This document shows positions 1,048-6,811 of a stretch of DNA of 6,811 nt, one piece after another. The DNA comes from Neoechinorhynchus agilis (taxonomy: Eukaryota; Animalia; Acanthocephala), in assembly GCA_051530055.1 (NCBI GenBank), contig JBMGUZ010000099.1, forward strand, positions 1-6,811. Direction: 5' to 3'. Positions within the stretch are counted from its first letter, which is position 1; each line of letters starts with the position of its first letter. Both the position numbers and the translations under genes were made by a program. The notes under the pieces were generated by a model. The model had not been told where the DNA came from, did not search any database, and saw only the letters and a list, made by a program, of their open reading frames with translations.

Positions 1048-2050
1048 GTAGTTTCTAAATTGGTTTCCGCGTTACTTTCAATCGTTTGCGTGTTTCGTCT
1101 TTGTTCGAAATTAATGACAAAGTTTCCCAACGTTTTTGCGCTTAACGTTACACTTTAGAAATTGAGATAAAGCTGAACTTGGAGACGTGCTCTTAAATTT
1201 ATTTAATGAAATGATCTCAATTAAGTGAATGTAAATCTGTTCACCGATTGGTCAGAAAGTTTTTCTACTTGTTAGCATTTCAGGATATATTTATTTCGCA
1301 ACTTTTGAAGAAACACAATGTTCTAACAACGGTTTTAGCATTTTAAAGGCACAAGTAGAGACTTTAAGTGATTATAGACCGGATAATAACGGTGGATTTA
1401 AGTTTTATTCACATTTGAAACACCCCGCGCCATAAATTTTACCTTTTGAACCCCGTAATCGCTACATAAATCTTTAGATTTGGACAATGAACTCGTTTCT
1501 GGAAACATTAGAGTCAAATTCACGCACAAAAAGCTATCGTAACCAATAACCCCAACGATCCGAATAAAGCATCAGTACCATCATCGCATGCTACCGCCGT
1601 CCCTCTAACCAATCGCTTTTAAAGAATAGCCTAAAACATATTTCACATCTTAAAAACTCGAATAGTAACCGAATCCCTAACTTCTTTGACTATGCGCAAT
1701 TCCATAGGCGCCCGAAAAGCCATAAAAGACAACCACATAATTTTTCCACATTAAACACAATTTTCCTTCCGAAACAAATATAAAGTTATCACCGAGTCCC
1801 TACATCATTATACCATAAATCGGCTCATCCAATTGTCTCTGATCCAACCATTGCCGATCGAAAACTTATATCGATTCCTCCCTTAATTTATCTTCCACGA
1901 CAACCAAAACAGTCGTAATCTCCTTCATTTCCACAGGACGTTCGTCTTTCAAAAATCGGAAATGTCCTTTGCTAAATGCACTTAGTTGAAAATATTCGAT
2001 TAGTGGCGTCAAACAAATCGAATTAATTTGCAGCATATAAACGATTCCTA

Positions 2051-3610
2051 TTAACGACGTGATCGGTTTCTGGTACGTCGTTGATGGCTGCGTGGGACCA
2101 GCGCATTAGGATTGTAAGCCATTCGATAATTTTCTCCTTGCGGCATTTGCATTCGTGTAGGAAACTGAGGAATTCCTTGAAAATTATTCGGATGTTGCGA
2201 ACTCCATCGTGCTCCATCGTAATAGTTTTGAAGGTTATGTACCATTCTCGATGGATTGGATTGGTTTCCTCGATGATATAGTCGCTGTGGAAAACGTTCA
2301 TTAATATAGGGCCTTTCGGCGTAATATCCTCCAGGATAAACTTCCATACTATTTGGCACCGATTGATTTATCATTCGGAAATATCCTGGTCGATAGACGT
2401 ACTCATTAGAGGTCGATAATGAAGTTCCTTGGAAATTGTTATAGGCATTGCTCATGGGTTGCGCCTGAGGTTGAACCGCAATCAAATCGTAAGGGGTCCA
2501 CGTTTGCGGATACCTTTGCAATTGGTAAGAATGCTGCGAGTAGACATTCCCTCGGTTGTCTTGTTGTATTGGATAGCGTCCTCGCGGCATCGACAGATCC
2601 AACGGAACTTCCTGTTGACTGCTCATTGGTTGAACAAAACTTTCACCGTACGATGGTATAGCCGCCATGTAGTTAGATTGAACACTCGTATTGGCATTTT
2701 GGTGTCGTTGTTGAATCGATCGTTGGTGGCTGCGATTTATTTGCTGCTGTTGGGAGAAGGATTGTCCCATTTGAACCAATGGCCATTGAGTTGATCCAGT
2801 GGAAACGCCATACGATGAAACTCGCTGAACTGACCTATCGGGATCGTTACGATCAGGACGTGAACGTTTCACTTCAGTTTCATTCTGATGTTGCTCGTCT
2901 TTTGCGGTCGTTTCGTGTTCCGTTAACCTTCTCTTTGGTTCAGCTACTACTGATTTATCCGAAAGTTCAACATCAGCTGTACGTTTTCTGGGTTTACTGG
3001 AAGATCTCGCGGGTTTGTTTGTTTTCTTCGAAATTTCTAGCAGGGGTTCAACTATTTTAAATTTCTCCATCATCTCCTCGGCGCTTGTACCCGAAAGTTG
3101 GAGCATTTCATTGCCATGAGCAGTGATTTTTACGCTTGATTCCCTAAACCAAATTTCTCCGACTTTGGAGAACTCTGGATAATAATATACCCGCTTTACA
3201 GTTTTCCTCAAATCTGGCAACTTCATTGCTTCCCAATTGTTAAATAACAAGTCAAGGTCAACGCAATATTTTAAAGTTATATTCAATCCGATATTTGTAA
3301 TCGAATAATCGCTCATTTGTCCGGCTCTGAGGCAAATGTTACCAATAAGTTCAGCAACATGATTAGAGAATAACTTTGCTCCGTCTTGTACTTCGCTTTG
3401 TACATTTACGACGACTTTCCCACTTCTAAAAATGCGAGCCGTTGCACCAGGAAACATCAAATCTTCACGATCATTTGGTACAGTGTATAAGATTGTTGGT
3501 CCTTTTTGCAATTCCGTATGCGGCATTTTCCTCTTTAGTTCGACAAGACTCACTTCGTTCATTTTGAATTTTGCACTGCAGTTGTAGGCGGTAGTGAGAG
3601 ACGATGTCAT
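2051..3610 (-). CDS. Divergent TBP-related factor: N-terminal two-repeat TBP core (aa ~8-196, nt ~3023-3589), basic linker, Q/N/Y/P/S-rich low-complexity C-terminal tail
   Basis: ATARIFRSGKVVV aligns to TBP TTALIFSSGKMVC; DYSITNIGLNITLKYCVDLD to [20 protein letters not shown]; YYPEF to YEPELF; LQLSGTSAEEMMEKFKIVEPLLEISKK to [28 protein letters not shown]. Motif order and spacing fit a full core. 519 codons uninterrupted. Confidence 0.85.
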   Translation of the reverse strand: MTSSLTTAYNCSAKFKMNEVSLVELKRKMPHTELQKGPTILYTVPNDREDLMFPGATARIFRSGKVVVNVQSEVQDGAKLFSNHVAELIGNICLRAGQMSDYSITNIGLNITLKYCVDLDLLFNNWEAMKLPDLRKTVKRVYYYPEFSKVGEIWFRESSVKITAHGNEMLQLSGTSAEEMMEKFKIVEPLLEISKKTNKPARSSSKPRKRTADVELSDKSVVAEPKRRLTEHETTAKDEQHQNETEVKRSRPDRNDPDRSVQRVSSYGVSTGSTQWPLVQMGQSFSQQQQINRSHQRSIQQRHQNANTSVQSNYMAAIPSYGESFVQPMSSQQEVPLDLSMPRGRYPIQQDNRGNVYSQHSYQLQRYPQTWTPYDLIAVQPQAQPMSNAYNNFQGTSLSTSNEYVYRPGYFRMINQSVPNSMEVYPGGYYAERPYINERFPQRLYHRGNQSNPSRMVHNLQNYYDGARWSSQHPNNFQGIPQFPTRMQMPQGENYRMAYNPNALVPRSHQRRTRNRSRR

Positions 3611-3616
3611 TTTTGT

Positions 3617-3654
3617 CTAAAGTAAAAGTAAGTTGAAATCTACTTCTGTTTATA
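3617..3654 (-). promoter_or_regulatory. Candidate 3' splice (or trans-splice) acceptor just before the ATG, and/or a TATA box
   Basis: Minus strand reads CTTACTTTTACTTTAG|ACAAAA-ATG (AG at 3618-3617); TATAAA at 3654-3649 lies ~40 nt upstream of the ATG. The two readings cannot be separated from sequence alone. Confidence 0.4.
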
Positions 3655-3740
3655 AATTTAAAGCAAATTCGATACAAGGAGGCTATGTGGGCCAATTTTT
3701 TCAGGTTTAGGAGAACTATTCGGCTGAAGCACCTTCTATT

Positions 3741-3754
3741 GAACTTCGAAGTTC
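3741..3754. repeat. Perfect 14-bp palindrome GAACTTCGAAGTTC
   Basis: Sequence equals its own reverse complement; ~130 nt upstream of the TBP-like ATG. Confidence 0.8.
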
Positions 3755-3835
3755 TAAATACATAAGGCCGAGCAATTTGTTTGTTTCTTTGCTATTAAAT
3801 ATTTGGGAAAGTATGAATCCGGGGGTGAGGGAGAT

Positions 3836-3859
3836 TGAACACGTGACGTCACGTGTTCA
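3836..3859. promoter_or_regulatory. Perfect 24-bp palindrome: CRE flanked by two overlapping E-boxes
   Basis: TGAACACGTGACGTCACGTGTTCA = CACGTG (3840-3845) + TGACGTCA (3844-3851) + CACGTG (3850-3855); extra TGACGT at 3869-3874. The palindrome is certain; the regulatory role is inferred. Confidence 0.6.
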
Positions 3860-4267
3860 TTAATTATATGACGTGTAGATTTAATCTTCGGTTAATTTTA
3901 TAGTTCGACGCAGTGGGGCGCAAATTTAGCCTAGCAGGAAAAAGAACCGTTTTTTATCACTGAATTTTTGGTTTAAGACTTCCAATGGTCAGTTGTTTTG
4001 AATTTTAAAAGATTCAAAATATTTGCATTCCGTATAATCCAGAAAAACGACATGGGTTCGAATTGTAAGCGATCATTTAATTGGTAGTGAACGAAATTCA
4101 AGTCTGTAAGGATTCCTCACTAGTCGTTAGCGAACTAATCGTGTTTAACGGCAGAATGTTAGCATCTAATTAAATCAAATCGAAGACTGCAAAGGAGAGT
4201 CCGTCGATGGCAATGCCAGGCGATTTTTGAATTTTAATTAGCGTAGTTTTTGATCATTTTTTAACGA

Positions 4268-4499
4268 TAGAATATTGATTATCTATTCTTCAATAAGGTC
4301 TACCTGCGCAATGCCGGCTAAACTGGCTTGTTAAGAATAAACGGTAATTATGTTTGAAGATTGAATTGTTCATATTGGTTGTTTTACGGCGAAGAATTTA
4401 AAATGATTTTATTTTTAAATCCGATATTTCGGCATCATCTTGTACGCGTTTATCAAGGTTGTAAATTGTTTCGAGATCAAATTGAAAGTTATAAAGGTA
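4268..4499 (-). pseudogene. Possible decayed fragment of a TBP-like paralog (second TBP repeat), overlapping the left hairpin arm
   Basis: Minus-strand translation YLYNFQFDLETIYNL..EISDLKIKSF, then after one frameshift PI*TIQSSNIITVYS*QASLAG, parallels LKYCVDLDLLFNN..KLPDLRK..EIWFRESSVKITAHGNEMLQLSG of the neighbouring gene. By-eye alignment with stops; DNA identity is low. Confidence 0.3.
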
Positions 4500-4657
4500 T
4501 TTTTCACAGTGAGAGATCGTTAGCGAAAATCGATCTTTATAACTTTCAATTTGATCTCGAAACAATTTACAACCTCCATAAACGCGTACAAGATAGTGCC
4601 TCCGAAATACCGGATTTTAAAACAAAATCATTTTAATTTCTTCGCCATAAAACAGCC
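4377..4657. repeat. Long inverted repeat / foldback: ~122-nt arms (4377-4498 and 4533-4657) with a short spacer; candidate hairpin RNA
   Basis: Arms differ by 11 substitutions and one 3-nt indel by my count; perfect 41-bp stem (4456-4496 / 4535-4575) and perfect 17-bp stem (4437-4453 / 4578-4594). Confidence 0.95.
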
Positions 4658-5264
4658 TAAACGTTAATTTGTTTCCCAGTCACGGTATCAAAAAAAGTTG
4701 AAAATACGATTATTTCTAAGCCAATTAATTTTGTAAACAGAATACGAAATCTAATTCTCATGATTACGATAAGCGAAGCTTTTGAAATTAATTCAATGGT
4801 TTTCTTTGGAGTCGAAGAAGATTTTCCGTAACATGATTTTAAATATTCATTTAGATTTAAAGCACTGATATTTATTATAGGCGATTTGCATTAGATAATG
4901 AACTAAAGACCAAAGCATTAACGTCAAAGCAAAAGGCATGAAGTGTAATAGTGTTACGTTTTGTTCATATTGACGAAGATTTAATCACCTCGTGGGTAAT
5001 GTTTTCAAGATAAAGTATTCTTGAACAGTTTTTATTCGACCAACAATATGTTTTGGTGATTTATTTATCAATGCAAAATAGAAAGATTATCCAAAATGGA
5101 GCATGGATTTGTGGTAAAGGATAATATCATTATTAAATTTTAGTTTGCTCCTTATACCCGGCTTACGTGTCTAATTGTTTTTACCTCGATCACGAGCATT
5201 GGAAACATGAAATAAATATTTTATTATAGCGATCTATGAAAATTTCATCATTCTCTTCAATTAA

Positions 5265-5495
5265 TCTATCTTGATATCTTATCGAGAGCCCATGATTGCA
5301 CCTCCGCGGCTCCCGTAGAGCAAGTTTTAGATTTCTTTGGACTGTTTTTACTGTTCATCTGAAATTAAAATCGATTGAAGGATTTTGCGCTTTTATTTTC
5401 CGTTTTATGCCCGGAAGCAGATCTCTAGAAAGACAACAATATTTAACATAAATATTCCACTTTATTAGAGGCTAGAGAATAATCGATAAGATAGA
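5265..5495. mobile_element. Possible MITE-like element
   Basis: TCTATCTT..TATCTTATCGA (5265-5285) is inverted relative to TCGATAAGATAGA (5483-5495); TAA on both flanks (5262-5264, 5496-5498). Short and AT-rich, so could be chance. Confidence 0.2.
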
Positions 5496-5504
5496 TAATA
5501 AAAA

Positions 5505-6811
5505 CACGTTTTATTTGTTGATTTACAAAGAAGAGGACCATGTACTTTTGGGTCTTCATAAACATACAGAAATTTTTTGTTTGTCTGTTCAGATGGGAAT
5601 GGCCGGTAAGGGGATGTCCGTTCGAGTGGGAATTGGCGGATATTGTTTGCAGGAGCGTTTGTAAGGTTGGTCTTTCCTCAGGTTAATTTCAAGCTATGAT
5701 ATCCGAGAAGATTTTGCGTTTGGAAAAAGGAGCTTAGGTACAGGGAGGTGTTAAATTGAGGGAGGATGAAACGGATTAGGATTAAGAGTGTTGTGTTCAT
5801 GAGAAAAGGGGCGATATGTGGTAGAAATTGTGATGGTGGGGTTGATATGCGTTTTGATTGTTTTATGAAAATAGCATCAAGGCATTCGGTGAGAGGGGAA
5901 AATCAACTGTGCAATTTTTAGAAGCTCTTCTTCTTGAAACATTTTAAGACGGCGGATTTGAGATTTAGAAAGATTGCAAAATAAAGGATAACCGTAGGCG
6001 AGGGATTGTAAGATAAAGCCGAAGTAAAATTTGTAAAGATCTGGTGAAGGGATTCCTAAATGTCGGAGACGTTTAAGGAGATAACTTTTAAAAGTGTTGC
6101 GCTTGAGGGAAAGAGAGATGTGCGAGTGCCATTTCAAATTCGATTGAAATTGGAGACCCATAATTCTTAGGGAGGTTACTCGTAGGATGTCATTTAGAAG
6201 CTCAGGGGAGAATGTAGGGTTGTGGGAGAGAGAAGAGATCATTTTGAAGCATTCAGAGAAATTGAGATGGAGTTTGTGATTGGTGCAGAAATATTTTATG
6301 TGTGTGATTTCTTTAGAGGTAATGGGTGATGAGGGTGATATCGTCGACGTTTAAGAAGAGTTTAGAGTGAGAGGAGAGAGGTTTGAGGTTGTTTAGGAAA
6401 ATATTAAAGAGAAATTGGTGATAGCACTGCACCTTGAGGTATGCCTTTGGTGAGGGATAGGCTGACCGAAGAGGTAGAACGGCACTGAATGTATTGTTTG
6501 CGATTGTGAAGATAAGATTCGAGCCAACGGATCTGCCACGAGTTAAGATAAAAGACGGAGCAGGCCGGGAGAAGGAGTGAATGGTTCACGGAGTCGAAAG
6601 CTTTAGATAAATCAAGTTAAATGAGACGGTTGACATGGGAGGGATTATTGTCGAGGTCAGGTAGAAGATTGTCATAAATGCAAAGTAGGGCATCGGTTGC
6701 AGAAAATTTGGGCCGGAAGCCAAATTTTATAGTGAAAAAGGCGAGATTTATAACATTTTTCGATGATTTTTGAAGGAGCGGCGGGTAGGATGGATATTGG
6801 ACGGAATGATT
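5505..6811 (-). mobile_element. Decayed non-LTR retrotransposon (CR1/L2-group-like), 3' part of ORF2 reverse transcriptase plus 3' UTR; continues beyond the window
   Basis: Minus-strand RT motifs in order: FRPISILP..SKIIEK (from 6806), KFGFRP, LDLSKAFDSV (6616-6587), GIPQGAVLSP (6445-6416), KLFLNVDD (YxDD site, NVDD at 6351-6340), LRIMGLQFQSNLKWHSHI, C-terminal LPQFNTSLYLSSFF; several frameshifts and in-frame stops; AATAAA at 5515-5510. Confidence 0.92.

Follow-up and report, generated by a model that had tools for sequence, protein, structure and literature searches.

The paralogues of the TATA-binding protein (TBP) define alternative core-promoter systems, as is seen for TBP and TRF2 (TLF, TBPL1). 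TRF2 has been defined by the alteration of three of the four TATA-intercalating phenylalanines, one of them to Trp and one to His, together with the loss of Leu208 (Duttke et al., PMC4180970), and its Trp sits at the position N.L5.1, which is F116 in yeast TBP and F210 in human TBP (Ravarani et al., PMC7221094). The Glu pair of the YEPEL motif, at the positions C.L3.2 and C.L3.4, provides conserved contacts to TFIIB; in viral TBPs C.L3.2 co-varies with their own TFIIB, which is a precedent for a changed residue at this position that still functions; and N-terminal expansions are the norm in the TBP family (Ravarani et al., PMC7221094). Human TRF2 itself has 186 amino acids, with the core at residues 7-186 (PMC4180977). 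Herein we describe a TBP-like gene in a stretch of 6,811 nucleotides (the window, meaning the whole stretch analysed), which is a 6.8-kb unplaced, repeat-rich contig of Neoechinorhynchus agilis (Acanthocephala; assembly GCA_051530055.1), a parasite of mullet for which a genome and transcriptomes appeared in 2025 (PMC12690905). The gene is annotated only as a hypothetical protein in the public record. Our analysis suggests that its product, called the window protein below, is a TRF2-derived and lineage-restricted paralogue that would act in the nucleus, independently of TATA, to initiate or modulate the transcription of a specialised set of genes, and to this statement taken as a whole we give a probability of roughly 60%.

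The features on which the argument depends, in window coordinates, are these:

2051 to 3610, minus strand: complete intronless coding sequence (CDS) of the TBP-like protein, 519 amino acids and a TAA stop, without RNA junction inside the CDS in three RNA runs
3020 to 3607, minus strand: two-repeat TBP saddle core, residues 2-197, from the family profile against TBP of the PDB, the AlphaFold topology and Foldseek
3326 to 3607, minus strand: TBP repeat 1, residues 2-95, from the Pfam TBP match at residues 10-82, the phmmer alignment to yeast TBP and the model
3032 to 3307, minus strand: TBP repeat 2, residues 102-193, from the alignments, the model and the signature positions of PMC4180970 and PMC7221094
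3191 to 3235, minus strand: region with an 11-residue insert between H1' and S2' (WEAMKLPDLRKTVKR), from the family profile, the alignments and the model
2054 to 3019, minus strand: C-terminal tail, residues 198-519 (322 residues), from its composition and the lack of a family match

The CDS runs from the ATG at 3608-3610 to the TAA at 2051-2053, and in a random frame of the same composition (37% GC) the probability that 519 codons stay open by chance is about 1.5e-16.

It is near certain that the window protein has the TBP-family fold and belongs to this family. Taken alone, the protein scores 17.4 bits on Pfam TBP, below the cutoff of 22.9, and the match covers residues 10-82 of repeat 1 only; phmmer against the PDB sequences reaches yeast TBP with an E-value of about 0.01 over residues 53-122, and canonical TBPs score only about 17 bits against it. 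However, a family profile of five rows, which comprises the window core, the core of P0004 (a second TBP-like protein of the same genome) and the unaltered translations of the duplicate copies described below, matches yeast and human TBP with E=2e-12 along the chain positions 8-174 of 180. The AlphaFold model of the core, built from the same five-row alignment, has a predicted local distance difference test (pLDDT) value of 72 and a predicted template modelling score (pTM) of 0.60, and shows the order S1-H1-S2-S3-S4-S5-H2 twice, in residues 2-95 and again in residues 102-193; the pLDDT is 85-93 in lobe 2, 57-70 in lobe 1 and below 50 in residues 32-45. In Foldseek all of the 43 best matches to the PDB are TBP (E down to 8e-8, TM-score 0.5-0.66), the Swiss-Prot matches of the core are TBP, TBPL1 and TBPL2 only, with the best TM-scores for TBPL1 (0.62/0.66), and the AlphaFold-DB cluster matches are all of the TBP family. 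Two tandem TBP repeats and the duplicated saddle topology, by which membership in the TBP family (Pfam PF00352) is judged, are thus both present. An earlier note on this DNA, made from the letters alone, had claimed a complete two-repeat TBP core near the N-terminus, followed by a long stretch of extra residues, and had called for profile and structure searches; these bear it out, as the core begins at residue 2, is followed by 322 extra residues and folds as a saddle in the model.

The sequence of this saddle has drifted far. The structure-based identity is 14-20% to TBPs, instead of the about 80% core identity expected of a canonical TBP, and 11-13% to TBPL1 models. At the diagnostic positions the residues read as follows:

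human F193: S189 in P0004; T39 or P38 in the window protein (alignment uncertain)
human L208: T204 in P0004; R59 in the window protein
human F210: Y206 in P0004; F61 in the window protein (kept)
human F284: H292 in P0004; S148 in the window protein
human F301: F309 in P0004 (kept); H165 in the window protein
YEPEL motif: YEPEI in P0004; YYPEF in the window protein (Y144, E146, F147; first Glu lost)

F61, which corresponds to yeast F116 and human F210, is the sole TATA-kinking phenylalanine retained, and the two pairs of phenylalanines of canonical TBP are absent. Of the two Glu contacting TFIIB only one is present, with Y144 at C.L3.2 and E146 at C.L3.4, and the central Asn persists in lobe 2 as N106, while its counterpart in lobe 1 is S4. 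Compared with canonical TBP, including TBP2/TRF3 and insect TRF1, the window protein has the fold, the repeat topology, F61, an SGK-type turn after S4, N106 and E146 in common; it differs in that its extension is C-terminal and not N-terminal, and in that three of the four phenylalanines are lost. Counted by numbers the TRF2 signature is found, with three of the four phenylalanines altered and Leu208 replaced by R59; the substitutions specific for TRF2 are not, as N.L5.1 is still Phe, Ser148 stands at F284 and the His is found at F301 instead. Judged by these residues, the DNA face and the TFIIB face are unlike those of either TBP or TRF2. Because three of the four intercalating phenylalanines are altered and Leu208 is lost, the saddle is not expected to bind TATA.

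The nearest relative comes from the same genome. P0004 (KAL7667466.1, hypothetical protein ACOME3_006278, 344 amino acids) is the sole non-self relative found by phmmer with residues 1-200 among 1.84 billion representative proteins (E=1.2e-6, 44.5 bits). Pairwise BLASTP aligns the two proteins at 1e-15; over 141 residues free of gaps 26% are identical, and the local alignment score of the pair is 150, where shuffled sequences give 30 +/- 5. Pfam TBP readily recognises both repeats of P0004, at 94.9 bits, and the protein matches the TRF2 signature: three phenylalanines are altered, one of them to His, Leu208 is lost, and an aromatic residue other than Phe occupies N.L5.1. The assignment of P0004 to TRF2 leans partly on the identity of the phenylalanine retained in human TBPL1, as we take it to be. 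Because P0004 fits the TRF2 pattern better (F193S, L208T, F210Y, F284H, F301 kept), the window protein is not regarded as the ordinary TRF2 orthologue, and the earlier claim of a lineage-restricted paralogue, distinct from the ordinary TBP or TRF2 gene, is supported. Both genes have an intronless CDS and the same 11-residue insert; P0004 differs in having a 150-residue N-terminal extension and a C-terminal core, that is the opposite layout, in passing the Pfam TBP threshold and in keeping YEPEI.

The insert in the WEAMKLPDLRKTVKR region is common to the window protein and P0004 and absent from yeast and human TBP, and in the AlphaFold model it forms a short extra helix at residues 132-136. This common indel is the best single argument that the two are sister genes. 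The earlier note had pointed to two unusual insertions in the core, of which the second is this one, at 11 residues. The first stands only in part: lobe 1 does have about 10 residues in excess near the N-terminal stirrup, whereas the position proposed for them, at PNDREDLMF, is uncertain between the H1-S2 and the S3-S4 loop, because the model, which takes EDLMF as a strand and places the excess in the H1-S2 loop, has a pLDDT below 50 at residues 32-45.

Other relatives were sought in several ways. A word-indexed search with the full window protein returned the protein itself and P0002, a chimeric gene model described below, and the same search with the P0004 core returned P0004 only; no relative was found in the scan of viral contigs, and none in the JGI metagenome contigs. 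The window protein thus appears restricted to N. agilis so far, in the sense of 'not yet seen elsewhere' in searched databases which hold few acanthocephalan proteomes. As a duplicated TBP-fold gene that diverges in one lineage, it resembles the expansions described in other groups, such as TBP1/TBP2 of cestodes, TBP1/2 of Entamoeba, TBP1/2 of plants and the viral TBPs; however, those proteins are mostly recognisable by profile and keep the DNA-kinking residues, while the window protein is missed at the Pfam threshold and is without a detected orthologue outside N. agilis. A satellite of about 265 bp occurs near both genes of N. agilis, with one unit at window 5496-5706, adjoining the first exon of the TBP-like gene, and at least 13 tandem units at 9468-12640 of the locus of P0004 (L003), 2.4 kb downstream of that gene, where the DNA depth is about 9000.

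The tail is rich in polar and basic residues (Q 12%, S 11%, R 11%, P 8%, N 8%, Y 7%), with a grand average of hydropathy of -1.29 and a net charge of +17, and carries clusters like those of nuclear localisation signals (NLS), namely KPRKR at 206-210, KRR at 226-228, KRSR at 248-251 and RRTRNRSRR at 511-519. It has no match in Pfam, no look-alike above chance in the Atlas (best score 0.53) and no homologue in the word-indexed search, and from its composition it looks like a disordered nuclear interaction region. A circular permutation, by which the tail would correspond to the N-terminal extension of P0004, was considered from a QFP.R..MQ resemblance and rejected, as the local score of 42 stands against a mean of 37.7 for shuffled sequences, 115 of 500 of which did equally well. 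With respect to TBP, TBP2 and TRF1, the inverted architecture claimed in the earlier note is real; it was overstated as a general feature, since a core at the N-terminus is normal in TRF2. Moreover, AlphaFold-DB clusters contain predicted TBP-family proteins in which the core comes first and is followed by 100-1000 residues; the following entries may be compared:

B4IJV6 (a TBPL1 entry): core at 2-171 of 278
A0A077Z006: core at 19-194 of 729
A0A2P6N1S4: core at 31-206 of 1218
A0A6I8W8A9 (a TBPL1 entry): core at 230-407 of 716

The layout is unusual and not unprecedented, and it is reversed only with respect to P0004 and to the usual N-terminal expansions; relative to its nearest relative P0004, the unusual part is the long C-terminal tail only.

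The gene has also left copies. Two decayed partial copies, L001 and L002, lie on chromosome CM121341.1, and show several stops and frameshifts, 5' truncations and a DNA divergence of 13-18%. In L001 codons 1-46 are missing, and the reading frame is broken by an in-frame stop and by frameshifts. In L002, which lacks codons 1-71, the stretch from codon 72 to codon 298 still has 98% identity to the gene, and the remainder is eroded by stops, a frameshift and deletions. A retrocopy origin was rejected, as no poly-A tail is seen at the boundaries and non-transcribed or rearranged pieces are included; because neither copy ends in poly-A, both are taken as DNA-level partial duplications with gene conversion. 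The L002 locus (7732-9414; CM121341.1 about 9.48 Mb) is a mosaic pseudocopy made of exon 1 with upstream DNA (97% identical), a 46-bp duplicate of window 2710-2755 and codons 72-298; it is annotated publicly as the hypothetical protein KAL7675975.1, and the public gene model of the pseudocopy (P0003) begins at the ATG equivalent to window 5206-5208. A junction of 2755 to 5156 with the same form as in L002 was seen in an RNA contig of run X4, which matches 5156-5424 of the window better than L002. At L001 (10001-13700; CM121341.1 about 13.97 Mb), the gene model P0002 (778 amino acids, ACOME3_003313) is a chimera of an upstream RRM-like gene and the frameshifted tail of the dead TBP-like copy.

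These copies served for the comparison of nonsynonymous and synonymous substitution rates (dN/dS) suggested in the earlier note, which was made against the gene's own duplicates. Over codons 72-200 of the core, 6 synonymous and 2 nonsynonymous differences separate the gene from L002, a dN/dS of 0.08 (binomial P=0.003), while the decayed 3' part of L002 gives 1.21 (Fisher P=0.002 against the core); the dN/dS against L001 is 0.5-0.67. Among the variants in RNA and DNA contigs the core has 2 synonymous and 0 nonsynonymous, and the tail 3 synonymous and 8 nonsynonymous. A second intact haplotype has several variant states in common with L002. These numbers are low, and yet they point consistently to a core that is constrained and a tail that is relaxed.

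The gene is intact and transcribed. The features of its transcripts and of the region upstream are listed below:

5185 to 5336, minus strand: distal first exon, from an RNA contig of run X2
3617 to 5184, minus strand: intron of the 5' untranslated region (UTR), 1568 nt, GT..AG, with 3616 joined to 5185 in the X2 RNA contig
1440 to 2050, minus strand: approximate 3' UTR, where the RNA coverage drops off between about 1820 and 1440
3838 to 3857, no strand assigned: perfect 20-bp palindrome AACACGTGACGTCACGTGTT (E-box/CRE/E-box, CRE being the cAMP-response element), about 230 bp upstream of the ATG
3628 to 3678, plus strand: 51-nt piece skipped in the RNA contigs of runs X1 and X4, of GTAAGT..AG polarity and not skipped in the DNA run X5

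The RNA contigs of the three runs span about 1440-3780, and the depth is zero at 801-1361 and 3980-4166, where the DNA run is deep. A spliced sense mRNA exists in one run, X2, since its contig joins exon 1 to the CDS through a GT-AG junction on the gene's strand and then continues for 868 nt of CDS without mismatch; the acceptor site precedes the ATG by 6 nt. The words sampled from the gene are present at 83-100% in seven RNA runs, each of them from a different sample. The 3' end of exon 1 reads ATG TTT CCA ATG CTC GTG ATC GAG and is joined in frame to ACA AAA ATG, and the exon 1 ATG at 5206-5208 is thereby in frame once spliced and would add ten residues, MFPMLVIETK, ahead of the annotated Met. 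Judging from this reading frame, an isoform from the distal promoter could start 10 codons earlier. At the other end of the gene an AATAAA signal is located at about 1409, near the end of the 3' UTR. The palindrome AACACGTGACGTCACGTGTT lies near the end of the X1 and X4 RNA coverage (3756-3980) and is a candidate proximal promoter element. The piece at 3628-3678 is probably the intron of a spliced antisense transcript over the start codon and the first approximately 600 nt of the CDS. In the text of the N. agilis transcriptome paper (PMC12690905) and of the one supplement available in text form there is no mention of TBP or TATA. The earlier note had gone on to propose a basal transcription factor, with a bias to the germline after the example of TRF4 and TRF5 of Drosophila as divergent TBP paralogues; neither the basal-factor function nor the germline bias found support in the present analysis, and a literature search under TRF4/TRF5 gave poly(A) polymerases and no such TBP paralogues.

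Taking the evidence together, the gene would have arisen by duplication from the worm's TRF2/TLF-like lineage, which is represented by P0004, and would then have diverged strongly. The whole two-lobed saddle is kept, while the surfaces on which TBP function depends (the phenylalanines, the Asn of lobe 1, the TFIIB-contacting Glu and the stirrup on the TFIIA side) are remodelled, and a 322-residue disordered basic tail with NLS-like clusters has been gained at the C-terminus. The product may thus be a nuclear, TRF2-like core-promoter factor which nucleates or modulates the pre-initiation complexes of RNA polymerase II at a specialised set of genes, with a putative role of the tail in interactions or activation; the changes in its TFIIB and TFIIA faces would imply weaker binding, or else binding to co-diverged partners. 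From the latter one might go further, and imagine a second, partly orthogonal initiation module in N. agilis, in which amplified and diverged TBP-like factors, among them the window protein with its Tyr at the TFIIB contact and its enlarged stirrup on the TFIIA side, are paired with co-diverged paralogues of TFIIB or TFIIA in a parasite-specific or germline programme. The TBP-TFIIB pairs of giant viruses act likewise; we hold such a module in N. agilis to be improbable.

Several points weigh against the TRF2-derived initiation factor that we prefer. The function proposed for the window protein is one that we infer, and the proposed TRF2 parentage is read from one relative, a common indel and signature residues. 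The loss of the TFIIB-contacting Glu at C.L3.2, together with the altered stirrup on the TFIIA side, may even exclude the protein from the pre-initiation complex. Of the 11 variants in the tail 8 are nonsynonymous, and the evidence for selection amounts to 8-10 substitutions, which come partly from a gene-converted segment. Besides, in two of the three RNA runs (X1 and X4) the contigs reaching the 5' end carry the intron of antisense polarity, and contigs cannot split the depth by strand.

Among the alternatives, the gene could be a young duplicate that is drifting into decay, open and transcribed and without a useful role. Dead copies do arise in its family, as L001 and L002 show, residues of key contacts have been lost, the variants of the tail and the dN/dS of 0.5-0.67 against L001 would suit such a fate, and the contig that carries the gene is unplaced and rich in repeats, with a satellite and a MITE-like element adjoining (MITE, miniature inverted-repeat transposable element). 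However, all of the 519 codons are open while the sister copies, at 13-18% DNA divergence, are broken; substitutions in the core show a strong preference for synonymous sites; a spliced sense mRNA is made and the sequence is present in the RNA libraries of at least seven individuals; and, to judge from the 26% identity to P0004, the frame has stayed open through a long separate history, so that decay is rather unlikely. Somewhat less likely again is that the saddle has been co-opted outside the pre-initiation complex, as a decoy for TFIIA or another partner, or as a nucleic-acid-binding or condensate protein acting via its Tyr/Arg/Gln-rich tail. TLF has been reported to affect transcription negatively by sequestration of TFIIA (PMC3142196), and the loss of three of the four phenylalanines, of one TFIIB Glu and of the lobe-1 Asn, as well as a long, basic and Tyr-rich tail of the sticker-and-spacer style, would agree with this; on the other hand the saddle, E146 (C.L3.4), N106 and F61 are kept, constraint acts on the core and the protein contains no further domain. 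In fact such a co-option overlaps with the initiation factor or modulator proposed above, and differs from it in the partner or target only.

The window protein might also be simply the ordinary TRF2/TLF (TBPL1) orthologue of the worm, evolving fast as in many parasites. It resembles TRF2 in its saddle, in its N-terminal core as in the 186-residue vertebrate protein (PMC4180977), in having three of four phenylalanines altered and Leu208 absent, in its nearest relative, which carries the TRF2 signature, and in its best Swiss-Prot TM-scores to TBPL1; some predicted TBPL1 entries have C-terminal extensions too, and TLF cores are only 40-45% identical across metazoans (PMC3142196). Yet P0004 in the same genome scores 94.9 bits against 17.4 on Pfam TBP, and has the TRF2 pattern with His at F284, Phe at F301, an aromatic residue other than Phe at F210, and YEPEI. 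The window protein differs from that pattern by Phe at F210 (Trp in TBPL1), Ser and not His at F284, His at F301 and Tyr in place of the Glu at C.L3.2. From TBPL1 it differs moreover by the 11-residue insert after H1', the excess of about 10 residues in lobe 1, the orphan tail of 322 residues and the low identity to TBPL1 models, and we regard it as doubtful that this is the ordinary orthologue. Far less credible than any of these is the endogenised TBP gene of a giant virus (Nucleocytoviricota). The nearest Atlas feature clusters of the core include TBP clusters dominated by Nucleocytoviricota, though Atlas taxa are no evidence of transfer, and the CDS is intronless; against this, the scan of viral contigs gave no relative, the closest relative is the host gene P0004 with the same specific insert, the 5' UTR is spliced and the repeats nearby are host-like.

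Several other features lie in the window. At 4377-4657, inside the 5'-UTR intron, there are nested inverted repeats with 56-nt arms of 89% and 66-nt arms of 94% complementarity. With a DNA word depth about tenfold that of the neighbouring sequence, this hairpin is a MITE-like element of very high copy number. At 5877-6589 on the minus strand, decayed reverse-transcriptase fragments (RVT_1 at 15.5 bits, below threshold) with very high DNA depth point to the remnant of a retroelement without long terminal repeats (non-LTR), and 6365-6811 has a 79% DNA match in L001. An open reading frame of 202 amino acids at 432-1040 on the plus strand has no Pfam match and no RNA coverage over 801-1040 in the three runs, and is probably not a gene. 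Rfam gave no match in the window.

As a practical warning, the standard Pfam annotation misses the window protein. The finding itself holds moderate interest, as lineage-specific TBP paralogues are common and we infer the function of this one. Nevertheless, the window protein would be a natural experiment on the limits within which the TBP saddle can drift while still working, and it could mark a lineage-specific transcription programme in the acanthocephalans, a group with almost no molecular genetics.

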